This document shows positions 1,307 to 63,442 of a stretch of 64,000 nucleotides of DNA, piece after piece. The notes under the pieces are model-generated. The model made no database searches and was not told the origin of the DNA. It was given only the letters and a program-made list of their open reading frames with translations. Within the stretch, counting starts at the first letter, position 1; every line of letters begins with the position of its first letter. Made by a program: the position numbers and the translations under genes. Source of the DNA: Podarcis vaucheri (taxonomy: Eukaryota); assembly GCA_965113315.1 (NCBI GenBank), contig OZ220372.1; one strand, given 5' to 3'.

Positions 1307-1507
<201 letters not shown>

Positions 1508-2919: not shown

Positions 2920-2992
2920 CCCATCTTGTTCCCAAAGGAGTAGGGACAACAAAATCCAGAACTAAGACCTTCTTGCCAAGTTTGGCAGCTTC
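2920..2992 (-). CDS. TXNRD1: Thioredoxin reductase 1 exon ([24 protein letters not shown])
   Basis: 73-nt exon, ttccag acceptor, G|GTAAGT donor. Confidence 0.96.
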
Positions 2993-4288: not shown

Positions 4289-4652
4289 AGGGACGCGGGT
4301 GGCGCTGTGGGCTAAAGCCTCAACGCCTAGGGCTTGCCGATCGAAAGGTCGGCGGTTCGAATCCCCGCGGCGGGGTGCGCTCCCGCTGCTCAGTCCCAGC
4401 GCCTGCCCACCTAGCAGTTCGAAAGCACCCCCGGGGGCAAGTAGATAAATAGGTACCGCTTACCAGCGGGAAGGTAAACGGCGTTCCGTGTGCGGCTCTG
4501 GCTCGCCAGAGCAGCGATGTCACGCTGGCCACGTGACCCGGAAGTGTCCCCGGACAGCGCTGGCCCCCGGCCAATAGATGTGAGATGGGCGCACAAACCC
4601 CACAGTCTGTCAAGACTGGCCCGTTCGGGCAGGGGTACCTTTACCTTTACCT
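4289..4652 (+). mobile_element. Sauria SINE, full length
   Basis: GGGACGCGGGTGGCGCTG head with B box GGTTCGAATCC, (ACCTTT)n tail, 13-bp TSD TAAAATGGCGGGT at 4276-4288 and 4653-4665. Confidence 0.95.
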
Positions 4653-5254: not shown

Positions 5255-6859
5255 GTAGGACGTGGCGGCAAGCATGGGGGAATGCAACTACAAAGTGAAG
5301 TCAGGAGGTTCCCTACAGATGGGTGTTGCCGTTTCACTGTACAGAACGCAAATGCAAGATCCAAGTAATAGAAGATCTGATCAGAAAGGGTGTGTGACAC
5401 CCACTCTCTACTGATAACCAATTGATAAAACATAAACATCAAAAGGGAGACAATTGCTTTCTGTAAGTGAGCTGGCCCAGGCCTGCAAAAGCCAAACTGA
5501 TCCCAACCAACTCTGACTGATACTGTCAAAGCTGCAAATGAATTCTAACTCAACTTCATTAGGAAGCTTCCTTGGAAACTTTTTTCCAAGTTTGGAAGCC
5601 TTCAAATGTGGTACAGAGTGTCCAGGGACACTGAAATGCTCTCCCACTTATTTCCTGTTGCCAGTTTTAATCCGTCATCTGTGATTCTGGGGAAAGACTC
5701 ATGTCTGAAATCCTGGAGAGTCACTGCCAGAAGTAGAAAATGTAAAGCTAGGTGGTCAATATCAGGCAGATTCTCACATTCCTATAATTCTCTCTCTAGT
5801 GCTACAGCTTTATCATTCAACTCACAGTAGGAACTAGAAAAAGCATACTAACTACTTTGCTGACATGGGTATGAAACATTTGCTCGCTTTCTCCCTAAAT
5901 AGGCGGCCTTTTATTGTCCGCTGTTGTCTTCTCCTTTTCCCAAATTCATTAGGCTTGATTCAAGAACTCTAGTGCTCAAGCTGGTGATTAAGCATGGTAT
6001 ATTTTAGATGGCAGGCACTATTCATCAGTACATTACATACTTGTGCTCTCAACTGCAGAACCATTTGTCTGCAAAAGGAGCAAAGCCCAACAATTGAAAT
6101 AAGGCACTCACACTTCAGTGTAATTAATCACCAGCCTGTTTTTTAAGCCACTGACCACACCAGGAGCACCAAGATGCATAAACACCGTCTAATTATTCCT
6201 GGAGATGATCATCAAAGGAAGCAGAGAAGAGAAAAGAGGAAGGAGATAGAGGCCCCAAATGTACTACACATTTAAAGCCGTATCATACCACTTTAAACAG
6301 TCATGGCTTCCTCCAAAGACTTCTGGAAATTGTAGTTTGTTATGGGTGCCAAGAGTTGTTAGGAGAGCCTTACTCCCCTCACAGAGGTACAATTCCCAGA
6401 ATTCCTTGAGAAGAGGGACTGACTGTACACCATTCTGGGATACAGTCTCTGCCCAATTATCAAGAGCAACAGGATAGACTGGACTCCAGATGGAAAACCT
6501 GGTCTTTAGTCAAGAGTAGAAATGTTTCCAGAAAAAGGGGGTTCCAGGTCCATTCTAGAAGGTGGATCTAAAACAGAACAGTGATGTTCCCAGGCTAGAA
6601 TTTGCCTTGCAAATCCAAGAAGCCTCTGGAGGAGGAAGGAGCTGGATTTGTCATAAATCCTTTTGCAACGCTAATGTTAGAGTCTGCACAGAGAAGCGTA
6701 TCTGCACAAGGCCGTTTTGTATATGGACAGAATGGATTGCAAAATCTTTTTCAGACACCGGATTCTCACTCCTACAGCTCAGAGTGGATCCATTCTTGGA
6801 CTAGGACCAAGCTCTGGTTGGCTAGATTGCTTTCATGACCACACTTCTACTTATCATAC

Positions 6860-6979
6860 CTTGGAAGCTGCAAGTCCACCTGAGCCCCCTCCAATAACTA
6901 TCAGGTCGTAGTCATAAGAAGGTACCAGTGCTTGTCCATTCACATCCAGAAGCTTTTTCAGGGTTCTTTCATGGTGTGC
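6860..6979 (-). CDS. TXNRD1: Thioredoxin reductase 1 exon (AHHERTLKKLLDVNGQALVPSYDYDLIVIGGGSGGLAASK), FAD-binding motif
   Basis: 120-nt phase 0-0 exon, tttag acceptor, AAG|GTATG donor, YDYDLIVIGGGSGG; GTG at 6943-6941 where the canonical initiator Met is expected. Confidence 0.96.
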
Positions 6980-9429
6980 CTAAACAAGAGAAAAATAAAT
7001 GTGTCCATTAAAATGAGCCCAGGATAGCTTGGTACTATGAATCAAATGACAGAAAAAAATTATTATGGCAAGGGGGAGAAATCATATGTGGAGAATAAGG
7101 TGCACTGGTAGTGTTTAGCAAAACAATGGAAGCTGCCTTATACCAAAACAGACCACTGAACCATCTAGCTCAGTGTTATCTACACCAGGTGTGGACCACT
7201 TTGTTTTTTACTAGCATCTTGAGGTCCACCAAGCAGAGCCAATTGCCTACTGCACCATACTGAACCATTCACAGGGGATGACCAGAATCTGAGTTATCGC
7301 AGACCTGGAATGCTAATATGGTAAGAGAAAAAACCTCAGTAGTGATTGTTAGCTATATGAACCCAATCTCTTTCCTTAAGCCACTGCGGCTGTTTGTCCT
7401 TGCTGATAACACTGCTGTGGTGATTACAAGGCCTACAAAAGTAACAACGAATCGTCCAAGCTACAAATGTTAAAACCATGACTATATCCAGGAGTGGCGC
7501 TTTAAACATCACTGACTACCTTGCCCCCCAACTCCTCCCCCATCATGTACTAGCAACTGCAAAGATTGTAAGAAAAGAGGCACTCATTGTTTAAATTATC
7601 AAATTTGGAATCAAAATTCTCCTGCAGGAAATCTGTTGACTGTATTGTGGATGACTGGTTACACCTGCCATCCCCTTTTGTAAAATTTAATAGCTTGTTC
7701 CTACTCTCCGCTTTCCACAATTTGCTATGTGTGTTACTTGGGGCTGGTGTTGCTGAGCAATGGATGATTTGGCCGTAGGGCAGCTGGCTGGTTTGATTAT
7801 CTTCTATCCTGCTCTAATCCTAGAAATCTATGAAATGAAAAGTGAGAGTCCATAGTCAAGTGAATGGAAACATCCTGGAAAAGGGGTGTCCACCTTTTGC
7901 CTGGAATCCTGCTAGAAATTGAAAATATCTTGGAGAAATCCCAGTTTACTACAAGGTAAAGATATTTAGATATTAAGATCTGATCGGAATCTTTGCTTTA
8001 CTAAAGTTAGGCGCATCCACAATTGTGAAGAGAAGTGAAGTAACAACTTTACATCAATCTTCCCCCCATGGTGGGGCAGAAGTAGAGGAAAGGATTGAAT
8101 CTGCCCCATCTCCCCACTCCCTTTTACAAACTCCCTCAACTACTTTTGCTTAAGTAAATAAAGTCACAGGGAAAGACTGCAACTCACAACTAGTTAGGAC
8201 TTAATTTCATTTTAGAACTTCCTCCTGCAAAACTATAAAGAGAACCTGTAAAATGTTAAAATCACCCTGTTTAAATAGCAGTTTTGCTGCCCCACTGTCT
8301 CTATAGCCAATGCTACGCTTCTCATAAATATCCATGCCGCCAAATAATTAACAAACCTGAATTGCCTGTTCACTGGCATGGGGATCATATTTGCATGAAA
8401 CTCTCTTTCACTCACAGGTTGATAGCTGTAGACACAAGGCACAGAGACAAATGTACCTACTGCAACCCTGAACCCATCTCTTTGGCATGCACATAAAAAA
8501 GCCCGATCAGCTTTCCTGGAAAGGATGGGCAGGGTTTGGCAAGGAGCCAAGCTGCTTGTTGCAGAAGCAGCCATCATTATGTGAGATGCAGCCCCACTGG
8601 TCAACTGAAAAGGGACAGCTCTGTTCAGCTGCAAATAACGATTTGCATAAGTACACCCTAGAAGAACCAATCAAAAGCCTACCCTTTTGTATGCATGCAT
8701 TTCCTCTACACCAGTTTCAGAGTATGCTCCAGAAATACAGATAAAAATCAAATCATACCGTGCCACAGCCCAGAAGAATTGGACCGGTAAACTGATTAGC
8801 AGCCATTATCCTCCGGTAATGATTATCTAAATTTCACAAATGCATTTTGACAGCTGGGGTTGGCAAAACACATTCCCTATCCCTCCACTCCATTTAAAGT
8901 CATTGTATCAAAAATTCACAAGGCCTAAACTTCACCAGGAGCAAAAACTGGCACAGTGCTCTCCCGCCTCTGGATAAAACGTTTCCGCTACCATTGACCT
9001 TGGTGGTACAAGAGGATCTCAAGAGCAGATATAAGTCAAATTAGAGCAGTTCCAGAGGGCCTTGACTTTTGGAAATGAGAGCATTCCGATTTATTTATTC
9101 TACTCTTCTTAACAAGGTATTTATTTATTAATTAGAAATATACATATATATACTGTTTTCCATTTATTATGTATGCATCTAAAAGCGCTTCATAAAATGC
9201 ATAAAAGCATGAAATTAGCAGCTGTTAAAAATGTCCAGAGATCCCCTCCAGATGTCCTTTAAATTGGGCAGCCATGAGATTTGTGCTCTCAATACTGTTC
9301 CCACCTGCAAAAGGTTTTATTTTAGGAGGCAGGGGGAGAGATAGGGTTGTATCCAATGGCAGTACAACTCAGAGTAGACCCTTTGAAGTAATTAGACATG
9401 ATTAACTTAGGCTTATTAATGGGCCTACT

Positions 9430-9780
9430 GGTCAGTAATCACACAGCTCACAGATGGAGTTAACTCTTCATTAGCAAGAAGACAATTTCCACAGGCCTAA
9501 TGAGCAGAGCAGCTCATTCTCAGTGTTCTTCCTCCATGAAAATCCCACTCTCCTGCTTCAGCTTCTACCTCTTATTCTGGACTTCTCTCTACCACAGACT
9601 CTCCCAGCTCACTAAGCCCTGCTACCTCTTCAGCTTCTGACACCCCCTCTTCCCCATCTTCTCCCTGTGACCACTCAATTGAGGTCCCACCACCAGTCCC
9701 TGGGCTCCAAGCCTTCTTCCCTTGGCGATTCCCCAGCTGGTTCCTTCCATCATTCCTCTGCAGCCAACCAGTCCCTGACA
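9430..9780 (-). mobile_element. Probable solo LTR fragment
   Basis: Begins TGTCAGGGACTGG on minus with a purine-rich interior; family not identified. Confidence 0.4.
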
Positions 9781-9879
9781 CAAAACTTCAGTTCCCGAAG
9801 CCTCCTACTGAAATACTGCGACTTTTTATGCCACAAATGTCCCAGTTTTGTCCCACTTTCGCCCTCCCAGATGGCAATG

Positions 9880-10190
9880 CATAAGAACATAAGAAGGGCC
9901 AGCAGGATCAGGCCAGTGGCCCATCTTAGTCCAGCATCCTGTTCTCACTGTGGCCAGCCAGATGCTTGTGGGAAGCCTGAAAGCACTCTGCCCACCTGCA
10001 ATGCCCAGCACCTGGTATTCAGAAACATACTGCCTCAGACCATGAAGGCAAAGTATATCCATTGTGGATTGTAGTCACTGATAGCCTTATGCTCCATGAA
10101 TTTGTCTAACCCTCTTCAGAAGCCATCCAAGTTGGCAGCTATCACTGCCTCTGGTGGAAATGAATTCCATAGTTCAACTGTGTGCTTTGC
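9880..10190 (-). mobile_element. Old CR1 LINE 3' fragment
   Basis: ATAAGAACATAAGAA tail, GGCCCATCTTAGTCCAGCATCCTG motif; similar copies near 35783 and 46010. Confidence 0.7.
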
Positions 10191-12421
10191 CAATGCACTG
10201 AGGAAGCATCTTTTTTTAAAAAAAAGAGAATTTCGTACAGACAGCCCAGTGTAAGTCCACCACTAATGCACTATTACTGTGTCCGTGACATGTCACAGAT
10301 TATACCTGCAAAACAAAAACACCAGTCTGGAGTAGCACACATCATTTCAGCAACTACAGCAACCAGAATGGGAAGGAAACCCTCCACAATTCCATATAAA
10401 TTACGTTTGTGTTCCCTTGGTATTTTCTGGCCGTTGATATTAACCGTCAGAAAACACCAAGGAAACAGAAAGGTTCTTCATATACTTAGAAGCAACAATA
10501 CAAATATAATAAGACAAATGGAAATATGAGAAGCACTGAAAGGAAACAGCAGAATGAGCTACACAAGAGGGAGAAAAGGGTATGAATAGTTAAAAAGACA
10601 GGGAGACGAAGAATTTGCCTGGCGTCTAATTGCCTGGCACTGGCATCTAAAAGCCAACTGATTAAGTCACAAGCCTTCTTCTTTTGGGGAAGGAATCCCA
10701 ATAACTGGGACACCATAGATGAAACAAGCTCTATTTCTGATCACCTCCTAGCTTATCAAAAGACCAGAATAAACTGGAAAGTCTTCGCATAGGATTTCCA
10801 GTGAAGCATGCGGGAAGGTCCCAAAGGAAACCCTTACCCCAGATCACTTCCTGTACTCCTAAGTGAACACTACACTACAGCACTGCAAACACCAGGAACA
10901 GGAAATGGGACAAGATCACAATGCTTGCCCTCGTGCTTTGATCATCATACTTTTCAAGTCAGAAGGGAAGTATGTGGGAGGATATGGCAGGGCCTTTTCT
11001 GTTGAAGCTCCTACTCTGAGGTGCACCATTTGCTCCAGACCAAACTTGATTTGTGTTTTTGTTCGTTTGTTTCGGGACACAACACAAAACCTCTATTTTC
11101 AAAATACAAATGAGAAAACTGCTGTGAAAAGGACTGCTTTTTATATGGCTGCCTTGCATAATTTTCAAGTGACTTTAAAACGTGTATTGCAAAATAAATT
11201 GTGTGTGCTCTCCTGTTACTTGTAAGGCACCTGAAGCAATTGTTGCTTGGAAATTCTGAACACTGATACCATTAATAAACTGACATTGTTGACTCTTTGG
11301 GTGAGTGGTGGGCACAAATGGAATATGACGCTTCTTTCTGAATGCTTTTAGCCTATGACTTTTGAACTCACAGCTTTCAGCGCAGAAGCAAGTCACAGGG
11401 GTGAGCAGCCTGAGGCCCTCAATGTAATTTAGGACTCAAATTCCCATCAGTTATAGGCCAGCAACATATGTAGAAATCTAGGTTCAGATTTCTAATCAGC
11501 TATGAAGCTCAATGAGTATCACCATCTCTCAGCCTGATGCATCCCACAAGGTTATTGTGAAACCAAAATGGTGCTTCAATTTCTTTGGGGAAAGCGTGGG
11601 TTCAAAGCGTAGGAAATATGGTAATTATCATTCAGCGATCTGTAATTTGATGGAATGCAAATACTTCCAATCACAGGAAGAAGTCTAGCACAGTTGCCTG
11701 AGTGGCCTCAGAATTCCCCTTCAGATCTTTGTGCTGAATATAGGCATGTTTGAAGCAAAACTGGCCTTAACAGAAACTTAAAAACAAACAAACACCCGGT
11801 TATTTGTCATTTGCAGATATTATACAGAACAGGAACAGATTAACTTCCCTCCCACCCACCCCTAGAGGAACATATTAATACATGAGATGTAACACAATTG
11901 TAGTCATAATCACCCTAAAAAAAGAAACAAAGATGTTTGTCCACAGTCTGCAATGTGTTGCTGGTGGCCGATAGCCATGTTCCTTTGTAATAAAGTCAAA
12001 CCATTATTTTCTAGAAACTGTCTCTTGTTAACAGGAACTCCGAGGGCCCGTCTTACCTGCACAGCCTTCTCCACTCTAAGCCCTCAAGCGTTCACCCTGA
12101 ACAGGCCTAAAGACTTGGATGAAAATGCTCCTACCCTTGACCTCAAGGCAAGTCAGGAATGAACTTACTGCCAACTGTGCTCTCTACTGCACAGATCTAT
12201 CTACTCCCTGGCCAGATGTCTGTACTTCGGCCATTTCCTGCAATTTATATCCCACCTTTCCTCCAGGGAGTTTAAAGTGGTATGCATGGTTCCTCCCTCC
12301 CCGTTTTATCCTCAAAACAACCGTGGGAAATAATGCCTGGCTCCAGCAGATCACCCAGTGAGCTTCATGGCTGCCCAGGTCCTCATCCAATCCCTACTCT
12401 GTTACACCACACAGACTAGAC

Positions 12422-12558
12422 CTGGCATAGGCAAACTCGGCCCTCCAGATGTTTTGGGACTACAAATCCGATCATCCCTAGCTAAGAAGACCAGTGGTCA
12501 GGGATGATGGGAGTTGTAGTCCCAAAAACATCTGGAGGGCCGAGTTTGCCTATGCCTG
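12422..12558. mobile_element. Palindromic hAT-type MITE
   Basis: Long inverted repeats GGCATAGGCAAACTCGGCCCTCCAGATGTTTT...AAAACATCTGGAGGGCCGAGTTTGCCTATGCC. Confidence 0.85.
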
Positions 12559-12699
12559 GACTTAGAGGGATATTAAATTTAAACTACAGCACGGGGGGGG
12601 GGGCATTCCAATGCACTATTATTCTATCATGACGCCTCCCTTTCAAAGCCACGCTGCTTTTTTAAAAATAAGTGTTATCGGAAGATTTCACTCTTCCCC

Positions 12700-13460
12700 C
12701 TTTCCCGCCCCATATGCTTCGAAGTGCCCGCGAGAAAACCTAAGACCAAAACACAGGAATACGACACGCATTCACTGAAGGAAGCAAGCGGTGCTTGAGG
12801 CTTTCCCTTCTTTGTGGGGGAGGGAAACCAAGACTTACAGCGCAATCCCATGCACGTTTACTCAGAAGCAAGCTTCCCGCCCGCCAAGTTCAGTGCACGA
12901 TCCCATGCAAGTTTACTCACCAACAAGCCCCACGGATTTCAATGGGCCTTTAACTCCTGGGGAGGGGAGGGTTAGAGCACTGCTTTAAACGGGCGTTTAA
13001 GGGCGCTGGTGAAAGCTTTGTTTCGTTTCCAGCCGTTTCCTACCTTCCCAGTCTTGTCTTGGCCTCCGATCTGGTTCTGTCGGACGAAGACGACCGGCAC
13101 CGACGGCTCCATGGCGACTTCCAGGACCGCGACTCTCAGCAGCGGCGCATCTTCTGCAAAGGGGAAGAAAGGAGAAGCACGCCGCGTGCGCGAGGAACGC
13201 CTTTTATGACGCTTCGAGCCCGGGGATTTTGGGGGGCGTGGCCTCCCGCCTCCCCAGCCTCGCCAAGTTCCTTAAAGCTCTGCGCTGAGTCAAAGGCAAA
13301 GTAAGCATGACTTGCTTTTTTTGTGACTCTCCGCCCCCCCCAGGCTTCTTCCTCCTTCCTCCTCATTACGTGCCACGGATCGAACCGGACCGAATTCGCT
13401 ACGTTTCTTTGGGGGGGGGGTAGTAGTAACACGTGGCTCCTCGGCAGCAAGAGCCAATGG
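12700..13460 (-). promoter_or_regulatory. CpG island, TXNRD1 core promoter region
   Basis: High CpG density around the 110-nt exon; TGACTCAGC (ARE/AP-1) on minus at 13284-13292, GC-box-like GGGGCG motifs, CACGTG 13430-13435, CCAAT 13454-13458. Confidence 0.8.
13044..13153 (-). CDS. TXNRD1: TXNRD1 110-nt exon, C-terminal part of the glutaredoxin domain (EDAPLLRVAVLEVAMEPSVPVVFVRQNQIGGQDKTGK); contains probable main ATG at 13112
   Basis: Long polypyrimidine tract plus gcag acceptor, AAG|GTAGG donor, in frame with the 6979 exon; aligns without gaps to recalled human EDGRALEGTLSELAAETDLPVVFVKQRKIGGHGPTLK; GTCGCC-ATG-G Kozak. Confidence 0.9.
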
Positions 13461-13703
13461 CTTCAAGTTGCAAGAAAGGAAATTCCGACTAAACATTGGG
13501 GGGTGGGCAGACTTTCTGACAGCTGTTCCGCTGTGGAACAGACTTCCGCGAGAGGTGGTGGATTCTCCTTCCTTGGAGGTTTTTAAACAGAGGTTGGATG
13601 GCCATCTGCCATGGATGCTTTAGCTGAGATTCGTGCATTGCAGGGGGTTGGACTAGATGACCCTGCGGGGTCCCTCCCAACTCTTAAGATTCAATTATTC
13701 TAT
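13452..13703 (+). mobile_element. CR1 LINE 3' fragment abutting the TXNRD1 promoter
   Basis: NGFKLQERKFRLNI-like RT C-terminus, GGGTTGGACTAGATGACC 3' UTR, ATTC tail. Confidence 0.85.
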
Positions 13704-14846: not shown

Positions 14847-15184
14847 GGCTAAAGCCTCAGCGCCTAGGGCTTGCCGATCGAAAGGTCGGCGGTTCGAATC
14901 CCCGCGGCGGGGTGCGCTCCCGCTGCTCGGTCCCAGCGCCTGCCCACCTAGCAGTTCGAAAGCACCCCCGGGGGCAAGTAGATAAATAGGTACCGCTTAC
15001 CAGCGGGAAGGTAAACGGCGTTCCGTGTGCGGCTCTGGCTCGCCAGAGCAGCGTTGTCACGCTGGCCACGTGACCCGGAAGTGTCTTCGGACAGCGCTGG
15101 CCCCCGGCCAATAGATGTGAGATGGGCGCACAAACCCCAGAGTCTGTCAAGACTGGCCCGTTCGGGCAGGGGTACCTTTACCTT
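14847..15184 (+). mobile_element. Sauria SINE, slightly 5'-truncated
   Basis: Near-identical to 4289-4652; 12-bp TSD TATGAAAGCTGT at 14835-14846 and 15185-15196. Confidence 0.95.
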
Positions 15185-20846: not shown

Positions 20847-20929
20847 CTTCTTACAGAAGCTGCAAGTTTTACTGCTGAAGATCATAACATCGTTTTCATC
20901 TCTGAGTGTGTGGGTGATTAACTTCCAGT
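20847..20929 (-). CDS. TXNRD1: Putative TXNRD1 glutaredoxin-domain exon with CSFC site (DWKLITHTLRDENDVMIFSSKTCSFCKK)
   Basis: VMIFSSKTCSFC matches the Grx beta1/active-site pattern (recalled human VVIFSRSTCTRC); phase-1 aag acceptor after a ctaat branch point; donor would be GC (AAG|GCAATG); boundaries uncertain. Confidence 0.7.
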
Positions 20930-26643: not shown

Positions 26644-26775
26644 NNNNNNNNNNNNNNNNNNNNNNNNNNNNNNNNNNNNNNNNNNNNNNNNNNNNNNNNN
26701 NNNNNNNNNNNNNNNNNNNNNNNNNNNNNNNNNNNNNNNNNNNNNNNNNNNNNNNNNNNNNNNNNNNNNNNNNNN
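26644..26775. other. Assembly gap (132 N)
   Basis: Run of N next to a SINE tail. Confidence 1.
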
Positions 26776-27133
26776 AAGGTAAAGGTACCCCTGCCCGAAC
26801 GGGCCAGTCTTGACAGACTCTGGGGTTTGTGCGCCCATCTCACATTTATTGGCCGGGGGCCAGCGCTGTCCGGGGACACTTCCGGGTCACGTGGCCAGCG
26901 TGACATCGCTGCTCTGGCGAGCCAGAGCCGCACACGGAACGCCGTTTACCTTCCCGCTGGTAAGCGGTACCTATTTATCTACTTGCACCCGGGGGTGCTT
27001 TCGAACTGCTAGGTGGGCAGGCGCTGGGACCGAACAGCGGGAGCGCACCCCGCCGCGGGGATTCGAACCGCCGACCTTTCGATCGGCAAGCCCTAGGCGT
27101 TGAGGCTTTAGCCCACAGCGCCACCCGCGTCCC
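26776..27133 (-). mobile_element. Sauria SINE, full length, followed by a (TACA)n microsatellite
   Basis: Reverse complement near-identical to 4289-4652. Confidence 0.95.
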
Positions 27134-31949: not shown

Positions 31950-32479
31950 TCACAACACCCCTCAGCCCCAGCCAGTACATGCTTACGGGGGCTGATGGGG
32001 TTTGTCCCCCAAAACATGTGGAAGGCACCGGTTTGGCAAATGCCTGTGGTCTGCAAAACAAGCCACAAACCTAAGTGAAGCACTGCTTTGATTTATCAGC
32101 CCCAAGACTTTCAATGGGCGACTTCTTTGGGCTCACTCTTTCTCTCCCTAACTTTGCCTCATGGGGTTGTTGCAGAAGGTAAAAAGGGGACGGGGAAGGA
32201 GGAAAATAACTTTTTATGTTACACCCAGTGCTTTAGGACAATATTTTTTTTAAAAAAAATAATAAGCTGATTAACAGCTTTTTAAAAAATCTCTTAAGTG
32301 GTGGACGATGTACAAAAAAATAAATATTACTGAAACAGAAATAAAGAGGTCAGGTTTAAAAAAATGAATGAAGTTGAATGCCAACAAAACACACCCACAC
32401 TAACCAATAAAATATTAGTAAAATGATAACCAATACAAAATCTAAATGGGAAAGGATGCTAAGTGAACCCGGAATATCC

Positions 32480-33040
32480 CTTCCGTCACTCCGAACTAAG
32501 AGCAAGAAGAAGTCTAGGCTTTACCCACCTGGGGCGGGCGGGGCTTTTGCCCTGGGGTCGCGGCTGGCGGTGCCCGCGGGCGCCTGGCGAACCACTTTGC
32601 CCTTCCTCACGGAGCTGCCCATGACGCCCCAGCACTCGCAGCGCCCCCTGCTGGCCGTTGGGCGCAAACGCCGCCGGGAACCCAGCTGGCGGGGCGCGTA
32701 TTGAGGTCTCTCTCTCGTTTCTCCCTTCGTGCGAGCAGCAGGAACGGAGCCTCCGAGGGAAGCGGGGCCGCTGCAGCCTTGCAGCCTTTCGGGAGTTTCG
32801 CGCTGCCAAGAAGGAGCTACCTCGCCTTCTCTGCCATCGTGCCGGTTGCGATGGCAATCGGATGCCAAACAAATGAATGAAATCCTGGACTAAGGAAGGG
32901 AAGGTGCGACCCCTGCTGGCCAAAGCGGCTCATGCTACTATTTCGACAAGGGGAATTTACTCCAGACTCTCGGTGTTTTGTCGGAGGGAATCAGCTGCAA
33001 ACCAGAACTTTAGGTTTCCTCATTTTGAATCGCAGAGCGC
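32480..33040 (-). promoter_or_regulatory. CpG island, distal TXNRD1 (Grx isoform) promoter
   Basis: CpG-rich with GGGGCGGGCGGGG and other GC boxes around the MGSS exon. Confidence 0.7.
32529..32622 (-). CDS. TXNRD1: Putative first coding exon of the long Grx-TXNRD1 isoform (MGSSVRKGKVVRQAPAGTASRDPRAKAPPAP)
   Basis: GGCGTC-ATG-G Kozak in a CpG island, CAG|GTGGGT donor, 94 nt ending in phase 1, compatible with the 20929 exon (G+AC = Asp). Confidence 0.7.
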
Positions 33041-36979: not shown

Positions 36980-38540
36980 TTTTGTCCCTGACGGGGAGGG
37001 GGGAGACGCCATTTCAGGGGAGGGGGGGGTGTCCGCCTCAGGTGCCCAAACATCTTGAGCCGGCCTTCTTGAGTTCTGACAGGAAAACAGGACTCTTCAG
37101 ACGAGCCCGCGCGCGCGCCCGTGTGTGAGCGCGCGCCGCCGTCACCGCTTGTGACCGATTGTGTTGTTGGTTTGATAGTTTATTTATTTCTAGGCGGGCA
37201 GCTGTTTGAAAGCAGGAGGAGGAGGGAGGGAGGAGAGAAGGATCCGGCCAGCGGCGGGAGAGCCGCCCCATCGCGGGAAGAGCCCTCCCGCGAAGGGAGG
37301 GGGCGGCGGCTGGCGAGGAGGAGGCGGCGCGGAGGGAGGGCAGGCCGGCTCCGGGAAGCGGTGCTCCGCGCTGGGACTGGTTCCTTCGCAGCCATTTTCT
37401 GTCCAACCAAACAGCCGATTTGCGGAGGGAGCCAACCAGGGCCGCACTGGAGGTTTGTGCCTGGCTCCGGCCAATGATTGGTAACCGGTTTCACTGCAGG
37501 CTCGAATGAAATGTCCGTCTCCCTCCCCGGGCTCCGGCGCTGCCGCCGCGCCGTCGCTGAGGGGACCAGGAAGTGCGGGGAGAAGGAGAAAGCGAGAGAG
37601 AGAGAGAGAGAGACAGGCAGACAGACAGAGAGGAGGAGGAGGAGGAGGAACCGGGGGGAAGGAAGGAAGAAAGACCGCGGCCCGGGCCCGCCCGCCCGCC
37701 CGCGTCTTTGTACTGCCGCCGCCGCCGCGGAGCGGAGGCTCTGGCGGCCGTTGCTGGGGGCCTGGAGAGGGGAAAGCAAGCGGGGGCCGTTGGCCGAGGC
37801 CCCTGAAGGGAGACGGGCTGTTGTGACAGGAGCTGACCCCTGGAAGAGGAGCGGCGGCGGCGGCGGGAGGAGCGTGTCACCACACGCGGGTTGGGGGGGG
37901 GGAAGGTTGCTTGTGTGTCGAAAGGAGCCGCGTTTGCCGCCCGAGTCAATAGCCCTCCCGAGGCGCCTTCCCTCTCCTCTCCTGCTTTCCCAACCTGGGG
38001 GTTGGAGGGGACCCCCGAGGTTGAGGACCGACCACCCCCCTCTCGGCCAAGCGCGCGGCCCGAGCCGATCTTATTTTTAATAGGCGCCTCTTCTACTGTT
38101 CCCTCGTGGAGGCCGCCCTTCTTTTCCCTCCCTCCCTTTCGCCGCCCCCCCCCCGCTCCTTTTCTCCTCCTGGGGTGGAGTTGGGTCTATTTGTGCACAA
38201 GGGCTTTTGTCTGCTGCTCGCTCTTCTGTTACTCCCCCCACCACAACCCGTCTCCCTCCATATTTTTTTGAGGTTCCCTGAAGGAGGAATGGGGCGGCGA
38301 AGGGGTCGGTGGCTCCCCTCGCCACCACGTTGGCGATGGTCTGGAAGTCTCTTTCCACACACCCCACACAGTCGTCGCTCCCCCCCCTCCCCGCCTAGCC
38401 CTTGCACATGGCCGCCTTTCGCGGTCTCCAGAATGGCTTTGGTTGGGGAGGCGGAGAAACGAAGCTGTCAAAAAGCGCTCTACACGCTAGAGAAGCTGCT
38501 GTTTTTGTCTCGCTAAGTCCTGGTCGCAACGCGTGTGAAC
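36980..38540 (+). promoter_or_regulatory. CpG island, NFYB promoter
   Basis: Very GC/CpG-rich, GCGCGCGC runs, YY1-like GCCATTTT at 37391, CCAATGATTGG at 37471-37481. Confidence 0.88.
37340..37452 (+). other. NFYB: NFYB non-coding exon 1 (5' end approximate)
   Basis: GCAGCCATTTTCTGTCCAACCAAACAGCCGATTT...GCACTGGAG|GTTTGT resembles the recalled mammalian NFYB 5' UTR; donor at 37453. Confidence 0.7.
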
Positions 38541-40028
38541 CCCAAAGGTGGGTGGGCTTGTGGCTCTGGGGTGCCATTTAGCAGGGGGTGGGGGTGTCAT
38601 TTTCCTAGCTTCCACATGTTCAAACGTTACCAGTTACTTCTGTCTTGTTATGGGAGGTTTGTCTTTTGTCTTACACACTCGAGCTTCTTTTTCCATCCTC
38701 CCCCAGTCCGTTTCCTTGTGAAGTCTCCTTGTCAAGAACATTGTTTTATAGAGTTCATTTACACAGCCACTGGAATTGTTCAATCCTCAGACTTGTCCCT
38801 GGCCCCACCTGCCTAGTGTGAATGTACCCACCAGATTTGAATTGTTTGTGTGAATCCTAAGAGTACAAACTAGCTGGCTGGCATGAGTTCTGTGATTCCC
38901 CCCCCCCAAAAAAAAAACATAACTCAGTCATAGACCTCTGTTCCGTTTTGCATACATTAACTGATTTCTCCATTTGTTTTATTCGTCTAGTCAAAAAGTC
39001 TGTAAAGGTGGAAAAACAAGTCCAAGTTGCAGTTATGTGAACTAACCCATTTTGAAGACGTACTCTTTTGTTAGGGCAGTTTGTGTTTCTCCTTTTAGGT
39101 ATATAAAGGCTTTAAAAGCACCCAGCAAAATTCTAGAATGAATATTCCCTGTATACAAAGTGTATGTGATCTGTTGGTTTCCTGGCGTTGCCTACCAACA
39201 CTGAATAGCATTAGCTTAGGCCTTCTGTAAACAAACTCTAGGTAACCCGCAAGATGCTGTGTGACAATTCTATGCTGACATAGAATTCTCATGCAGAAAC
39301 AAGACAGGTTGACAGATCTTGTATTGGTTGCCTTTGTCTGCTTGTGCGAACTTGAATGCACAACTCTACCAGCAGAATGACAGATACCGCAAGCAGTAAA
39401 ATACATAGAAAAGAGTACATTGAACAGTATATAGAGTGTCATGGTGCTAGCCAGCCATGCGCTCTACCACCTATTCAAGCTTTTCCCCCCATTTTCCATC
39501 TTCTCTCCCCAGCAGACACTCATCATGTTGTTTTTAAACGCTGTTGGGATTTCCCACCCCCCTAAAGATTTTTTGTACTGCAATTTGTGTCCCACCATGC
39601 CTGCTGGCACCTCCCTCTTGTGGATGGTGCCATTTTGGCTACATAAAGATTACCACTTAGAGAAAGGTGTTAATATATAGAATGAATACAAAAACTTTTC
39701 TGAATAAAAAAGTATTATTGTATAAGGTTAAAGGCCTCTTCTTGCAGCAGTCTTCTTGATTTCAGCATGGCCTTAACTAGCCTGAACGCAATCTGATACG
39801 TTCTAGTACTATGTGCTGAGTAGCTGCACTAGAATTAACCGTGCTCATTAAAATCCTGCAACTGTGCCCAACTTGGGTTTTATTTTCTTAAGAGCCACAT
39901 TCACTTGAAAATTTGGTGAGATGTCCTTGTGTATATTTAGTATGGAATTGTCCTGTAGCTAGATTGGTTATTGAACTGATGGTTGGAAATTCCAAAACAG
40001 GAAAATGTTGAAGTAGGATTAATTACTG

Positions 40029-42278: not shown

Positions 42279-44796
42279 TTATTTGTACCCCGCCCATGTA
42301 GGGACGCGGGTGGCGCTGTGGGTTAAAGCCTCAGCGCCTAGGGCTTGCCGATCGAAAGGTTGGCGGTTCGAATCCCCGCAGCGGGGTGCGCTCCCGCTGC
42401 TCGGTCCCAGCGCCTGCCAACCTAGCAGTTCGAAAGCACCCCCGGGTGCAAGTAGATAAATAGGTACCGCTTACCAGCGGGAAGGTAAACGGCGTTCCGT
42501 GTGCTGCGCTGGCTCGCCAGATGCAGCTTTGTCACGCTGGCCACGTGACCCGGAAGTGTCTCCGGACAGCGCTGGCCCCCGGCCTATAGATGTGAGATGG
42601 GCGCACAAACCCCAGAGTCTGTCAAGACTGGCCCGTCGGGCAGGGGTACCTTTACCTTTACCTTTACCCCGCCCATCTGGCTGGGTTTCCCCAGCCCTCT
42701 GGGCGGCTTCCAACAAAGATGAAAGATACACTAAAATGTCACATATTAAAAACTTCCCTGAACAGGGCTGACTTCAGATGTCTTCTGAATGTCAGGTAGA
42801 TGTTTATCACTTTGACATCTGATGGGAGGGCGTTCCACAGGGTGGGCGCCAATACCGAGAAGGCCCTCTGCCTGGTTCCCTGTAACTTGGCCTCTTGCAG
42901 TGAGGGAACCGCCAGAAGGCCCTCAGAGCTGGACCTCAGTGTCTGGGCAGAATGATGGGGAAGGAGACACTCCTTCAGATATACTGGACCGAGGCCGTTT
43001 AGGGCTTTAAAGGTCAGCACCAACACGTTGAATTGTGCTCGGAAACGTACTGGGAGCCAATGTAGGTCTTTCAAGACAGGTGTTATATGGTCTCGGCGGC
43101 CGCTCCCAGTCACCAGTCTAGCTGCCGCATTCTAGATTAGTTGTAGTTTCCGGGTCACATTTAAAGGTAGCCCCACGTAGAGCGCATTGCAGTAGTCCAA
43201 GCGGGAGATAACCAGAGTATGTACCACTCTGGCGAGACAGTCTGCAGGCAGATAGGGTCTCAGCCTACGTACCAGATGGAGCTGGTAAACAGCTGCCCTG
43301 GATACAGATTTGACTTGTGCCTCCATGGACAGCTGTGAGTCCAAAATGACTCCCAGGCTGCATACCTGGTCCTTCAGGGGCACAGTTACCCCATTCAGGA
43401 CCAGGGAATCCTCTACACCTGCCCGCCTCCTGTCCCCCAAAAACAGTACTTCTGTCTTGTCAGGATTCAACCTCAATCTGTTAGCCGCCATCCATCCTCC
43501 AACCGCTTCCAGACACTCACACAGGACCTTCACTGCCTTCACTGGTTCTGATTTAAAAGAGAGGTAGAGCTGGGTATCATCCGCATACTGATGAACACCC
43601 AGCCCAAACCTCTTGATGATCTCTCCCAGTGGCTGCATGTAAATGCTGAAAAGCATGGAGAGGACAGAACCCTGAGGCACCCCACAAGTGAGAGCCCAGG
43701 GGTCTGAACACTCATCCCCCACCACCACTTTCTGAACACGGCCCAGGAGGAAGGAGCGGAACCACTGTATGACAGTGCCCCCAGCTCCCAGCCCCTCAAG
43801 ACGGTCCAGAAGGATGTTATGGTCGATGGTATCAAACGCCGCTGAGAGATCCAGCAGAACTAGGAAACAGCTCTCACCTTTGTCCCTAGCCTCCCGGAGA
43901 TCATCAACCAGTGCGACCAAGGCAGTTTCAGTCCTATGATGAGGCCTGAATCCCGACTGGAAGGGATCCAAATGGTCCGCTTCTTCCAGGCGTGCCTGGA
44001 GTTGTTCAGCAACCACTGGCTCAATCACCTTGCCCAAGAATGGAAGATTTGAGACTGGGCGATAATTGGCCATTGTGGCCGCATCTAAAGATGGTTTTTT
44101 AAGAAGCGGTTTAATAACCGCCTCTTTCAGCGGGTCTTGGAAGGCTCCCTCACAGAGGGAAGCATTCACCACCCATCAAAGCCCATCACCCAGTCCTTCC
44201 CGGCTAGCTTTTATAAGCCAGGATGGGCAAGGATCCAGGAGACAGGTGGTTGGCTTCACTCGCCCAAGCAGCCTGTCCACATCCTCGGAGGTAACAGATT
44301 GGTATTGATCCCACACAGCTTGACTAGACAGGACTTTAGCACTCTCCCGCCCTGGCCCTGCTCCCACGGTGGAGTCTACTTCTTCCCGAATCTGAGCGAT
44401 TTTATCTGCAAAAAACTTTGCAAAATCATTGCAGGAGATCATGTGGCCCGTACTGGGCCCCGATGTTGCAGGTGGTTCCGCTAAATTGTGAACCACTTGA
44501 AAAAGTCTCCTGCTGCTGTTTTCTGCAGATGCAATAGAGGCGGCGAAGAATGTCTTCTTCGCCGTTGCTATCGCCACTTGGTAGGCTCGATGTTGAGCTT
44601 TAACCTGTGTCCGGTCAGATTCGGAATGAGTTATCTGCCACCGGCGCTCTAGCCGTCTCAACGATTATTTCATTGCCCTCAGATCTGTGGAAAACCACGG
44701 GGCTCTCCGGGCTCCATGCAATTGGAGAGGGTGCTTCGGAGCCAAACAGTCAATAGCCCTGGTTAACTCCACATTCCAGTGGGCCACCAGGGAATC
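42249..44796 (-). mobile_element. 5'-truncated L2 LINE, about 2.2 kb, with RT domain (three in-frame stops)
   Basis: NYRPVSNLPFLGK, LDLSAAFDT, GVPQGSVL and YADD motifs in a single frame; (ATT)n tail; Sauria SINE inserted near its 3' end. Confidence 0.95.
42298..42664 (+). mobile_element. Sauria SINE nested in the L2 3' end
   Basis: 12-bp TSD TACCCCGCCCAT at 42286-42297 and 42665-42676. Confidence 0.95.
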
Positions 44797-45414: not shown

Positions 45415-47017
45415 GTAAGTAATGTATTGGTCAAAGACAGTGTCCATTCTTATTGTCATTTTTCACATTGCAGCTTGCAGACGTGTAGAAGAGACGTTAC
45501 TGCAGCCCTGTGAAAATGTATCATAGTCTGTAAAAGACTATATCATAAGACTCATTCACAGCTCTGTATTAAATTAATAGCTCTTATATGAGACCATTGC
45601 TCAGCAATGATAAAATTAATGTATACCATGTAGTACTTGTGTGCCATATGCTTCAATCCTGTGCACATTTCCTTGGGCTCAAGCCGCATGGAACCTAATG
45701 GGTGCTATCAGTTGTTGGTCATACTTAAGTCCATTGATTTCAGTGGATCTACATTTAGTATGACTTACTGGTAGTTGGGTATCACCCAGTGAGACATATT
45801 TAATGAGTAGCATTGTGTTGCAAGTAATGTGAGAAAAAGCTCATATTGGTACTGAACCAATCATTTTATTTTAACAATATTTTAAACAGTTTTAAAAATA
45901 ATTTTTGTGGCAATCCTTAAGATTACCAGTTCTGTCTCTTGTAGATCTACAATATGTCCTAAAAATCTAGTTTTCTGGGATCTTGTAATGTAATATCTGT
46001 AAACACATAAAGAGTATAAAAGGAACCCTGCTGGTTTCAACTACAAGCCTATCTAGTCCAGCATTGTGTTTCCCACACTTGTCTATGGGAAGCCCAACGG
46101 CAGAAGATGACTACAGTCGCACTCTCCAGCAAGTGTTTCCCAACAACTGAGATTCAGAGGCATCATGCCTCTGATCTTGATGGTAGCATACAGCCATGAT
46201 GAATAATTTCTGTTGGTAGTCTTTTCCTTCATGAATTTATTTAATTTGCTTTTAAAGCAGCATGTATGTCAGTGGACAAGATCACATACTGTGATAGCAA
46301 ATGAGCTCTGTCAAACCAGTAGAATGATCTCTTCCTTTTCAAGGGGCGGGCATTTGGAGAAAAAAGATGCAAGAGAAACTTTACTAACAGTTACTGTACA
46401 GCAGTTGTTTTGATGATGGTCAAAGGCTTTGTAATGGGAGGTGGTTTTCCAAATAAGGTAGGGTTGTCATACGCCCGGTTTCTGCCAGACGTGTCCTATA
46501 TGCCTGCTCTTTTGGGGATGACCCATAGCTTTGTGCTAAACTACATGCTTTGCATGCAGAAAGCCTCAGGTTCAATTTCTGGCATCTCCTGGTAGGGGCA
46601 AACCCTCTCTGAAACCTGGAAGAATCGCTGATGGTCAGTAGAGACAATGCTGAACTAGATGTGTGTGTATGTGTCATACAGTGATAAGCTATGTAACCCT
46701 TTCCCCCCCTTCGTGCTCCTAAAATGTCAGTTTTCAGCCCAGATTATTTTGACATGCTGGGATCACCCAGGAAAGCTGAAGAATGAGAAAGTGTATATGT
46801 TTACCTTTTTTTGTACATTTTTAAGGTGGGAATGTGAACTTCTATAGTCTACATATATGACAGGCATTTAAAATGAGAGCTATCATAGTAAAGTTGGCAA
46901 ATGTGTCTTTTTTTTCCTCTTCAAAATATGGCAACCCTGAAACAAGGTGTAAGTGAGGTTTTCAAAGGGGTACAACATATGAAGCTAATATTTGTATATT
47001 ATGCTCTCTTTTTTTAG

Positions 47018-47148
47018 ATACGGAGGATAGCATGAATGATCATGAAGACACAAATGGCTCCAAAGAGAGTTTTAGAGAACAAGATATATATCTTCCAATT
47101 GCAAATGTGGCAAGGATAATGAAGAATGCTATACCTCAGACAGGAAAG
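47018..47148 (+). CDS. NFYB: NF-YB coding exon 2 (DTEDSMNDHEDTNGSKESFREQDIYLPIANVARIMKNAIPQTGK)
   Basis: 131 nt, tttag acceptor, AAG|GTAATA donor, histone-fold start REQDIYLPIANV. Confidence 0.98.
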
Positions 47149-47753
47149 GTAATAACTCAGAAAGAGAGCTTTGCTAGCATTCCAGAATCTTAGATTCATC
47201 ATAGAATTTTTTTAAATGTGGCATAATCATTGGGTTGCATTCAGTGGGGGTTTAAGACCAAATATTGAGAGCTACTTCAGATGTGATGTAACAATGAGAG
47301 CAGGAAGTACAAGTGCTTTCTAATCCTCCACATCTCCAGCTGCCCAAAACAACTTTTGCATCTGCCTCTCATGGAGGGATTCTGGTCCTAGGTCCCCAAT
47401 TGTTGCTGGACTACATCCCATCATCCCTGACCATTCTGCATACTGGCTGGTGGTTGCACTTCAGCAACATCTGTGGACACACAGTTAGGGAAGGCTACTC
47501 TAAATGAATTTCAGCTTTGGTTTTTCAATTATTATTATTTCTAAAAAACTACTACTCAATTCAAAATTGTCAAACATTTCAAAATTGAGGTAATGTGTAC
47601 AATTAAACAGTTCTGTTTGGGGTAGCCTTACTGGCCCAAAACATTTTATTTTGTTGGCAGTTTTGCTGGTGTATATAGTAGGGTTAATTCAGATTGGAAA
47701 CAAGAAATAGTTTGATTACTAGATGATGATGATTCTGATGCTGTTTATTCTAG

Positions 47754-47951
47754 ATTGCTAAAGATGCAAAGGAATGTGTTCAGGAGTGCGTAAGTGAATT
47801 CATAAGCTTTATAACATCGGAAGCAAGTGAGAGGTGTCATCAAGAAAAACGGAAGACTATAAATGGGGAGGATATTCTCTTTGCCATGTCCACTCTGGGA
47901 TTTGACAGCTACGTGGAACCTTTGAAGTTGTACCTTCAGAAGTTCAGAGAG
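47754..47951 (+). CDS. NFYB: NF-YB coding exon 3, histone fold ([28 protein letters not shown]...YLQKFRE)
   Basis: 198 nt, ctag acceptor, GAG|GTTTGT donor. Confidence 0.98.
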
Positions 47952-50036
47952 GTTTGTAATCTTTCTGTGGTTTTACTTTACAACAGTTTGGAATTTTGTC
48001 TGTTATGACTACTTACTGTTTTTATATTTTATATAAACCAGGGGTGTTGACTGAAAATTTTATTTATATGAAGCCTATTTTCAGAATGTAAATGCTATCA
48101 TGTTTCTTTTTTAAAAAAATATATGTAATTTTTGTTGATGAACCAGCTGGTTTATATGCTTTTAAGGATTTGGCCTTTTTCTATCCCTGCTAGATTAGTG
48201 TTGCAACTTAGATGGCATTCACTGGTCTGAAAAAGAAGCTTGTGTTTACTAGCTTGCTGCTTTTACTTCATGTTTTTATTATCGCATGGTGCACTATTTA
48301 GAATTGCTTTATTTTAATGTGTCAAGTCCAGGAGAGCACATGGTCAAGCATCTCCACAAATTCAATGCGAAGCTTGAATAATCTAGCATTTGCATTCCCC
48401 TTTTGACTCTTCTCCTCTTCCCATATGTTATGCAATGTTTTACTTCCTATCTGGATCTGTCATGTCACAGGTAGACTTTCTATCCTCTCTGCCTTGCATC
48501 TATTTAACATTATTGTGCTTATTCTGGCCAAGAAGAACAGCAGCTATTGCCCACACACTTGCTCTTTTATTTTTATTTATTTAAAAACATTTTTAGGTCA
48601 CACTTCATATTAAAAGCCCCAAAGCGGTTTATGACAGTGGATTAAAACATTCCTAATGCCTGATAGGATAGGTGGGGGAGGGGGGGGGCAGCTGCTTTGT
48701 TCTTTGTAATCCCATAATGATGTGGGGGACAGATTGTGGTGGCGGTTCTCTTCATTGTCATTTTCTTACTTTCCTTCTTACTGTGGGTAGTGCTAAGGGG
48801 CAACAGCAATAAGGAGGGTGAACTAGCAGCAGTGGAAAGAAAGAGTCTCCTGAGTTAAGAAGCTACATTGCAAAATGTTTGAAATGAGCACTTAATGTAA
48901 TGTGTAAAGAAATCTGCAGTCGCTTTCTGTGGCAGTAGCTCAGCATTGCTCATCCCTGCCCTTTGCTCCTTTTCACATTGAATGCTGTTTGTGTGCAATT
49001 TGTGCCAGCAATAATTCCTTCTTATCCGAACGGGCTACGATGCACAGGTTAAACTGCTGCAGTTTCAAATGCACAAGTGGCAACTTGGGCTGCTACAGAC
49101 ATGCAACCTCTTGAATCTTCCTAGTTGTTTCTGGTGACACGAGGTCTAGCTCCCACAACCCTTTCACCCTCCTGTTTTTGGCAACCACTCACTAGAAGAT
49201 GTATATGAGAGGTTGTGTTTGCTGAAGAACCATAGACCTCTTGCAATAAAAGCTGAAGGAAATATCACACACCTGTAATTTAAATATTGCTGTTAATTGC
49301 ATTAACTGTGCTTGGATCTGTCTCTTGAGCTGCCTTTCCACCTTGCCTCATTTCTGTTCAGGGTTAGAATTCAGCTGTAGTGGACCTCCTGAAAACAGCT
49401 CAAGGCCATAGGCTTCTGGCCCGACTCAGGGGGGTTCTTCACACTTGCTTCTCACCCAAGGGGAGAATTCTGTGCGAATCTCTGGTTTGGCTAATTTAGA
49501 GCCTGCTGCATTCAGCCTTCGAGCCTCCAGATTGAGCCAAGCTTCCAGTTTTGACTACAAACCTCCTGACTGAATGCAGACTGTGTGACACAGACTGAAC
49601 CCAGGTTTACTCTGCTTAGTTAGTTTATAGTGTATAGCTTCTGATGCACAGCATCTCCTAACTTTATGTACATAGTGTAAATAGTTATCTTGTTGTTTGA
49701 GGCAATATAAACACTTTATACTTAACTCAGTGAGCAAGGAGTTTTCTCTGAAATGGCTAGCAATAACAAAGGGGGAAGATCCTGAAGCTCTGCTGTGCTA
49801 CTCTGCTGGTTACACTGCTACAGGTGTGATCTTAAAATGTTATCAACATTCACACCAAGAATACAGATAGAATTATTGGTGTACAAAATATGTAGAATTA
49901 CAGAATTTTGTAATGGCGATCCAGGGTTTGAAAAACCTATTGCGTATAAACTACACTGCTGTTCCAAAAAGTGTGCAATGATTTAAGTGGTTGAAAGTGC
50001 TTGTATCATACAAAACATCATTTATGCTTTTTCAAG

Positions 50037-61070: not shown

Positions 61071-61431
61071 AAGGTAAAGGTACCCCTGCCTGTACGGGCC
61101 AGTCTTGCCAGATTCTAGGGTTGTGCGCTCATCTCACTCTATAGGCCGGGAGCCAGTGCTGTCCGCAGACACTTCCGGGTCATGTGGCCAGTGTGACAAG
61201 CTGCATCTGGCGAGCCAGCGCAGCACACGGAACGCCATTTACCTTCTCGCTGGTAAGCGGTCCCTATTTATCTACTTGCACCCGGAGGTGCTTTCGAACT
61301 GCTAGGTTGGCAGGCGCTGGGACCGAACGACGGGAGCGCACCCCGCCGCGGGGATTTGAACTGCCAACCATGCGATCAGCAAGTCCTAGGCGCTGAGGTT
61401 TTACCCACAGTGCCACCCGCGTCCCTGTCAC
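61071..61431 (-). mobile_element. Sauria SINE in the last HCFC2 intron
   Basis: 14-bp TSD CTCTGTCAGGGGTA at 61057-61070 and 61432-61445. Confidence 0.93.
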
Positions 61432-62138
61432 CTCTGTCAGGGGTACACACCTTTTTTATTTTTATTGAAGGCCACACTGCTGTTAACTGTGGGTAAACAT
61501 TTTTATACATATTTAGCCCAGTGCTTTCTTTCAATTGCATTGTTACCCGCTTCCTCCTTTTCTCCCACAACCCCAGATCCTCATCTCTAAGCAATCTCTA
61601 TGTTTTTTCTGCAGTATATCTTTGCACCATGCATGATTGTATGTATCTTTTATCATGTCCCCCCATAGAGATCTTTTCTCTCAACTAAAAAGCTTCCAAC
61701 TCTTTAGTCCTTCCTCATAGAGGTGGTGTTTCAACACTCTGCTCCTTTTGGCAGCTATTGGCTGCATCTCTTCCAGTGCCAAGACACACAATTTAAGAAA
61801 GGCGACCAGAACCATTGATAAACAGATGTTCCTACAAAGAGATGGGAGTTGGCTGCATAAAGTCAGAGAAGTGGCTTTTGGCCCTTCAGTTTTGCACATC
61901 TGCCCAATGAAACGCTGATGCAACCCACAACCCATACTGCGCAACCCACAACAGCCTATGTTGAGCTAATAATTTGGACGAAGTGTCTCATGATTTCCAA
62001 ACATAAAATATATGCCAGTAGATAATTTTGACTTGACAATTATACAAATGTATTACTAAAGAACAAGTTCCCACAAACAAACAACCTGTACATATTATAG
62101 AGAAAAGTCAGGGTGTCTGAATAAATCATCCCCTTTAC

Positions 62139-63256: not shown

Positions 63257-63442
63257 CTTGCTAATTTTGACAATGGAAGGTGCTCCAGGAAATCCTGGGA
63301 TACAGGTCTTAAATTCGCTGACTTTACTGAATGGCCCTATGCCACAGCCGTTAATTGCTGCAACCCTGAACCTGTATAAAGTGCCAGGAGCAAGATCCTG
63401 TTTCTTAAGTAAACTGTTGTTTGGAATATCTGCATTATCTAC
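63257..63442 (-). CDS. HCFC2: Host cell factor C2 exon, Fn3 (VDNADIPNNSLLKKQDLAPGTLYRFRVAAINGCGIGPFSKVSEFKTCIPGFPGAPSIVKISK)
   Basis: 186 nt, ttag acceptor, AAG|GTAAGA donor; FKTCIPGFPGAP motif. Confidence 0.96.

Follow-up and report, generated by a model that had tools for sequence, protein, structure and literature searches.

The 64,000-nt stretch analyzed here (the window; Podarcis vaucheri, assembly GCA_965113315.1, contig OZ220372.1) carries on its minus strand the 5' part of TXNRD1, the gene for cytosolic thioredoxin reductase 1 (TrxR1). Where mammals and birds have their initiator Met, this gene reads GTG (6941–6943), and the deposited models of lacertid lizards take as residue 1 an ATG (13110–13112) within a 110-nt upstream exon (exon E; 13044–13153), which appears to stem from the C-terminal part of a glutaredoxin (Grx) domain. 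We consider it probable (about 0.82) that a promoter at exon E drives transcription through the old splice acceptor of this exon, that exon E is spliced to exon 2 (13044 to 6979), and that translation from AUG 13112 yields a TrxR1 that always carries an N-terminal extension of 35 residues. The main mRNA would start in CpG-island DNA abutting exon E, its first exon would run past 13153 before the splice is made, and in spliced reads the letters expected to follow 13044 are GCACACCATGAAAG. The extension would consist of a Grx β3-β4-α3 remnant and a linker with LKKLL, and the resulting 533-aa form would be the dominant one. A second, probably minor mRNA would join exon A, with its ATG at 32622, to the acceptor at 13153 and add 45 residues.

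The loss of the classical start is read from exon 2 (6860–6979, minus strand), which is preceded by ...ttctcttgtttag, followed by gtatga and translates as AHHERTLKKLLDVNGQALVPSYDYDLIVIGGGSGGLAASK; it comprises the linker with LKKLL (an LxxLL box), the lost start position and the GGGSGG motif that binds flavin adenine dinucleotide (FAD). In a phmmer comparison with PDB, the best matches of exon 2 were TrxR1 chains, and the Val encoded at 6943–6941 paired with the Met of human TrxR1 K-MNGPEDLPKSYDYDL (2zz0, 3qfa, 2j3n), D-V-NGQ of the window being aligned to K-M-NGPED. The GTG, which encodes Val36 of the 533-aa protein, thus stands where translation of the classical form begins. An earlier note on this DNA had reported the GTG in LKKLLD-V and had stated that mammalian housekeeping TrxR1 starts at the Met of MNGPED, and both statements agree with the translation on the minus strand and with the alignment. 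Its further claim, that the next in-frame ATG lies beyond the FAD and CVNVGC motifs, also holds: exon 3 (2920–2992, minus strand) has no in-frame ATG, and the first one 3' of the GTG is that of KKLM at 1432–1430 in exon 4 (1360–1479, minus strand). Both the FAD-binding and the redox-active motifs of TXNRD1 are present, the former in exon 2 (...VIGGGSGGLAASK, with GGGSGG) and the latter as CVNVGC in exon 4. The gene is identified as TXNRD1, rather than TXNRD2 or TXNRD3, by exact matches of six exons of the window to a Podarcis lilfordi protein named 'thioredoxin reductase 1, cytoplasmic'; squamate TXNRD3 models gave lower scores and differ in sequence (LACSK).

Exon E has a strong acceptor (...cccctttgcag before 13153) and a donor (gtagga after 13044), and is open in frame from end to end (DAPLLRVAVLEVAMEPSVPVVFVRQNQIGGQDKTGK). 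Its ATG stands in the context GTCGCCATGG, and 69 nt separate it from the donor, so that exon E joins exon 2 in phase 0. Sequence, splice sites and open frame thus bear out the 110-nt exon with an in-frame ATG at 13112 that the earlier note had described. The exon has two roles: it can form the 3' part of a first exon next to the promoter or, via the acceptor at 13153, serve as an internal exon. Translated from ATG 13112, the N-terminus consists of MEPSVPVVFVRQNQIGGQDKTGK from exon E and AHHERTLKKLLD from the linker with LxxLL, followed by V, and lacks a Grx active site. The proposal that this 35-residue extension is the default TrxR1 N-terminus is supported by its residue-for-residue identity, up to and including the V, with the N-terminus of P. 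lilfordi CAI5786165.1.

A Grx origin of exon E, also put forward earlier, is supported by two comparisons. Its peptide gave weak phmmer matches to glutaredoxins over α2-β3-β4 (E 0.5–1.6), and it aligns with the Grx-containing TXNRD1 proteins of geckos, snakes and Varanus; a Pfam search with exon E alone returned no hit. A poor AlphaFold2 model of the 533-aa protein, built from a 28-row alignment (mean predicted local distance difference test score, pLDDT, of 50), placed a strand-strand-helix in residues 8–34, which is only a hint that the remnant may keep a local Grx-like structure.

The 533-aa protein is already known in public annotation for Podarcis, with equivalent models across squamates. 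CAI5786165.1 (533 aa) starts MEPSVPVVFVRQNQIGGQDKTGKAHHERTLKKLLDVNGQ... (MEPSVPVVFV) at the equivalent of ATG 13112 and contains the six exons of the window as exact substrings at positions 1, 24, 64, 89, 129 and 177. The P. lilfordi models are thus identical to the window in the residues of all six exons and share both its MEPSVPVVFV and its MGSSVRKGK starts. For P. muralis (XP_028602813.2), P. raffonei (XP_053262330.1) and Zootoca (XP_034983408.2), RefSeq lists no TXNRD1 model other than this 533-aa form, the 533 residues of the deposited sequence reaching up to the Cys before the selenocysteine codon; in exon E, P. muralis and P. raffonei have Q-E-K where the window and P. lilfordi have Q-D-K, which by sequence points to P. 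lilfordi or a very near relative as the source of the window. Together with the P. lilfordi CAI5786164.1 and P. muralis A0A670ITZ9 isoforms, these lacertid models have an exon structure identical to that of the window. Outside the lacertids, models of 531–533 aa begin at the homologous Met in Rhineura, Elgaria, Tiliqua, Sceloporus, Candoia, Eublepharis, Gekko and Euleptes, and a 98-aa database protein, snake-like by sequence, has the same order of exons (MEPSLPAVFAQRHYVGGYDRTVK/AHREGTFRKLLEGDWQ.../EAAKLG..., that is, MEPS.../AHREG.../EAAKLG...). The trait is consequently not special to this lizard but squamate-wide in our alignment. Word searches were less productive, exon 2 alone returning only genomic open-reading-frame fragments and the stop-free piece around exon E zero candidates. 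A search of representative sequences with exon 2 yielded the 98-aa protein and a 359-aa coelacanth TXNRD1. A profile of these two and the six window exons, all as separate rows, brought up models named TXNRD1 from many squamates, turtles, birds, amphibians and mammals; the lacertid models came from a cluster listing. Our literature searches found no published account of the squamate TrxR1 N-terminus or of the complementary Met distribution described below.

The DNA directly upstream of exon E (13154–13470, minus strand) is promoter-like in its motifs and in how gene models treat it, and we infer that it serves as a promoter. It is one of three unique CpG islands in the window (the others at 32.4–33.0 kb and 37.0–38.6 kb), the remaining CpG-rich stretches falling on repeat copies. 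The motifs of this DNA include a CCAAT box (reverse, ATTGG) at about 13456, an E-box (CACGTG) at about 13433, GC boxes at 13255–13232 and a TATA-like cATAAAAg at 13207–13200. A core of the antioxidant response element/TPA response element type (ARE/TRE; TGACTCAGC) at 13292–13284, 131 nt upstream of 13153, is the only exact copy in the 64 kb; a looser ARE pattern showed no enrichment in the window. The ARE consensus and human examples are given in PMC6007815. An in-frame TAA at 13272–13274 (minus strand) closes the frame for transcripts that start further upstream, so that ATG 13112 becomes the first start available in frame. The only further ATG from 13307 to the start codon opens a predicted out-of-frame upstream open reading frame (uORF) at 13150–13136 (minus strand), MRRC followed by a stop (ATG CGC CGC TGC TGA), in the likely leader. 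In the Lacerta agilis model XP_033018484.1 the Met is preceded by 61 residues that are a collinear translation of the DNA adjoining the exon-E acceptor on its upstream side (83% identity to window positions 13271–13044), and the first exon of this model therefore passes through the old acceptor; the model is flagged as partial because the frame stays open at the equivalent of 13272–13274.

Transcript data confirm the borders and the strand of exon 2. Reads and contigs were compared over positions 6850–12849, which includes most of the 6,064-nt intron 1. Stranded raw RNA reads (X23) covered exon 2 on one strand only, as fits a minus-strand mRNA, and RNA contig pieces break off at the predicted borders 6859/6860 and at 6981, where two extra letters, AG, equal those at the end of exon E. 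One RNA contig of 2,363 nt (organism B) extends 111 nt upstream of exon 2, compared with the 110 nt of exon E, and one of 300 nt (organism A) extends 180 nt upstream. Within intron 1, RNA read depth in X23 was zero in every unique bin up to 12849, which places the partner exon of acceptor 6979 beyond that position; an alternative first exon within 6980–12849 was rejected on the same grounds. What read depth the intron showed was confined to two high-copy repeats, 9450–10250 and 12250–12650, on both strands. These repeats reached a summed contig depth of up to 4.4 million in one DNA run.

Several points weigh against the proposed route. The transcription start is placed by motifs and gene models, the RNA evidence for the 13044-to-6979 junction consists of contig ends and lengths, and the 4-codon uORF precedes AUG 13112. 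Deposited models are predictions in which the start is set by rule (first in-frame AUG). One difference in a relative's RNA contig (X9), which falls inside exon 2, and two in another contig (X1) are unplaced. Finally, Ensembl/UniProt list a 578-aa form for P. muralis.

This last point leads to the strongest competing explanation, that the dominant protein is the 578-aa isoform transcribed from the CpG island at about 32.6 kb, with Met 13112 internal in most molecules. The coding part of exon A (32529–32622, minus strand; MGSSVRKGKVVRQAPAGTASRDPRAKAPPAP) is intact, begins with ATG 32622, ends in a phase-1 donor (CCAG/gtgggt) and lies in a unique CpG island (32401–33000). Its peptide is identical to P. 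lilfordi CAI5786164.1 (578 aa) at 31 of 31 positions, and P. muralis A0A670ITZ9 is a 578-aa isoform of the same structure, in which exon A is joined straight to the strong exon-E acceptor, a Grx active-site exon with CSFC being skipped and 45 residues added. The organism B contig stops 1 nt past exon E, as if two alternative upstream sequences branched there. The earlier note had allowed for another first exon supplying a different AUG, and this holds in so far as a second annotated start exists; RefSeq, however, gives the 533-aa form alone for three lacertids, the L. agilis model reads through 13153 with no splice, and exon E has a CpG island of its own with ARE, GC boxes, CCAAT and a TATA-like element. 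We therefore regard dominance of the 578-aa form as unlikely.

A second explanation, that a short, mammal-like TrxR1 is made by GUG initiation at 6943 through skipping of exon E or leaky scanning, appears very improbable as the main route, and we rejected it. The GUG coincides with the ancestral start and has G at −3, and the short form would begin (M/V)NGQALVPSYDYDL. The thioredoxin reductase family also offers a non-AUG precedent, the CUG-initiated isoforms of mouse thioredoxin/glutathione reductase (TGR) reportedly described by Gerashchenko, Su and Gladyshev (JBC 2010; cited in PMC3316567). That N-terminus also arises from an unusual choice of start, but from a non-AUG codon, whereas lizard TrxR1 has an ordinary upstream AUG at hand. 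Scanning ribosomes would reach this in-frame AUG, in optimal context, first in the annotated mRNA. Moreover, the nucleotide at +4 after the GUG is A, snakes have Gln or Gly codons at this site, so the position is not retained as a squamate start, and no lacertid database model begins there. Skipping the 110-nt exon from exon A or B would also break the frame (phase 1 into phase 0). The dependence of a short form on GUG, which the earlier note had offered as the alternative to the extension, is thus unnecessary.

A third explanation, in which the true codon is ATG and the GTG reflects a private allele or a mistake in sequencing or assembly, has only the one or two unplaced differences in X9 and X1 to draw on and is effectively refuted, since six RNA-contig runs from three studies (X3–X8, organism A) contain practically all sampled exon-2 31-mers (31-mer shares of 0.24–0.27, about 0.24 being expected if the exon alone is present), exon 2 in a DNA contig of a relative (X20, organism F) differs only by a synonymous change at 6962, and Val recurs in P. 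lilfordi, P. muralis, P. raffonei, Zootoca, Lacerta and 14 further lizard species, all assembled independently. Among the listed differences of reads and contigs, which the earlier note had named as the check to make, none falls at 6941–6943. The change at 6962 in organism F is A for G on the plus strand (ACC to ACT, Thr), in a contig with an intron divergence of about 1%; all 18 stranded RNA reads at 6962 are unchanged there.

With the start at AUG 13112 as the preferred reading, we compared the two Met positions across vertebrates, a dating by alignment that had been proposed earlier. The canonical Met column is Val in the gene models of all 19 lizard species sampled, among them five lacertids, Rhineura, Elgaria, Varanus, Tiliqua, Sceloporus, Pogona, Phrynocephalus and four geckos. 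It is Gln or Gly in snakes, Thr in cryptodire turtles, Asp, Thr or Ser in frogs and Ile in Latimeria, and Met in Pelusios, birds, mammals and Callorhinchus. The exon-E column is Met in all squamates, turtles and frogs sampled, Thr or Ala in birds, Arg in Latimeria, Lys in Callorhinchus, and Ala or Ser in mammals, in line with the earlier statement that human has no Met there. Among tetrapods the distribution is complementary, with only the exon-E Met in squamates, cryptodires and frogs, only the downstream Met in birds and mammals, and both in Pelusios; Latimeria has neither.

Judged from this alignment, the exon-E Met is old and not a gain. It is common to turtles and amphibians, which makes the squamate change a loss of the downstream Met, and because geckos share the Val, the downstream start would have been lost no later than the base of crown squamates. 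Of the start-codon relocation originally suggested, the absence of the canonical ATG and the use of the exon-E ATG by gene models stand, and the gain gives way to the loss of one of two starts. A broader scenario, to which we give even odds, is that amniote TXNRD1 had two alternative Grx-less starts, of which squamates and cryptodires lost the downstream one and birds and mammals the upstream one, while Pelusios kept both. Over the 23 exon-E residues, non-lacertid squamates are 52–83% identical to Podarcis (12–19 of 23), compared with 86–93% in the core; the identity lies above the expectation for neutral drift and suggests that the extension is under purifying selection. In Sceloporus, Paroedura, Eublepharis and Euleptes a Met of the KMLEV type (K-M-L-E/K-V) stands three codons 5' of the Val, in a stretch that reads KLLDV, without the Met, in lacertids. 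The model of the 498-aa Sceloporus isoform X1 begins at this Met, which could represent a re-invented short form in those lineages.

The Grx domain itself seems to have decayed in the wall lizard. Exon B (20847–20929, minus strand; ...DVMIFSSKTCSFCKKAMRLLSCK), the active-site exon with CSFC, is in neither deposited Podarcis isoform. It ceases to be homologous to gecko Grx-TrxR1 after KKAMRLL; translated further, the frame yields VMQNLVGEEYGC and a stop where Varanus, geckos and snakes have the β2 strand (..V.Y..LELDQTE). No β2-coding exon was found between 20846 and 13154 by regular-expression and AG..GT scans, Pfam gave exon B a sub-threshold Glutaredoxin match (E 0.09), and the elements of a complete fold (CxxC, β2 ..V.ELD.., TVP and GG) did not occur together in one frame. 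Exon B hence looks like a decaying exon and not a hidden functional Grx fusion.

Two known mammalian arrangements help to place the lizard gene. In the human variant TXNRD1_v2, the start MSCE lies in a separate upstream exon and the protein is minor beside v1, which is made from an internal Met, whereas in the lizard the start lies within exon E and there is no v1-type start, so that the extended form would be the default. Human v2 (TrxR1b/KDRF) has 52 extra N-terminal residues with an LXXLL box, and a cloning primer shows its MSCE start (PMC4660583). As in v2, the lizard extension derives from the Grx-derived 110-nt exon E and the first 12 codons of the next exon, has no Grx active site and keeps the LxxLL box, here as LKKLL. 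Mariotti et al. (2012) described mammalian upstream exons U1, A, U2, B, C, D1, D2, E, F, G and H, with Grx-TR1 (human TXNRD1_v3; the major TR1 of fish) made of exons A, B, C and E (PMC3316567). In the window, homologues of exons A, B and E can be recognized, and their phases are compatible. Geckos, snakes and Varanus have models with the full Grx domain, whereas the deposited wall lizard isoforms hold only its C-terminal remnant.

The other features of the window frame this locus. Exons 5 (490–635, ending ...PHKIK) and 6 (177–292, ending ...EEYCIT), both on the minus strand, are the last in the window; the 3' exons of TXNRD1 fall outside it, and database orthologues end ...QSGC, cut at UGA. 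NFYB coding exons (46957–47190 and 47754–48005, plus strand) lie head to head with TXNRD1, the CpG island at 37001–38600 being by position the likely NFYB promoter, and HCFC2-like fibronectin-III exons (62098–62442 and 63209–63442, minus strand) lie beyond NFYB; both genes also flank human TXNRD1, in agreement with the identification of the gene. The CpG-rich repeat, with the translation RYPCPNGPVLTD...FEPPTFRSASPRR, occurs in five copies, at 4323–4640 and 14860–15177 (minus strand), 26783–27100 and 61078–61400 (plus strand) and 42460–42770, and matches most CpG-rich windows outside the three unique islands. A short interspersed element-like sequence lies at about 13460–13700, just upstream of the promoter-like DNA. 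A 347-codon open frame at 43135–44175 (minus strand) is reverse-transcriptase-like, of the long interspersed element type, with a 162-codon frame upstream of it (44179–44664, minus strand), and 132 N at 26644–26775 mark an assembly gap or mask.

For annotation, a mammal-like start forced by homology would truncate or misplace the N-terminus of squamate TrxR1, the lacertid protein being 35 residues longer. The distribution of the two Met positions is a neat example of start-codon turnover, and squamates would be a natural case in which a v2-like extension, a Grx remnant with a nuclear receptor (NR) box, is the only form of an essential enzyme; v2 is a poorly understood minor isoform in humans, and the biological interest is to that extent modest. 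If the scenario of two alternative starts is correct, the Grx remnant and LxxLL box would have been an obligatory, selected N-terminal module of every squamate TrxR1 since before the divergence of crown squamates, and the extension could serve a separate function, for example in binding partners or in localization, that in mammals is relegated to the minor v2.

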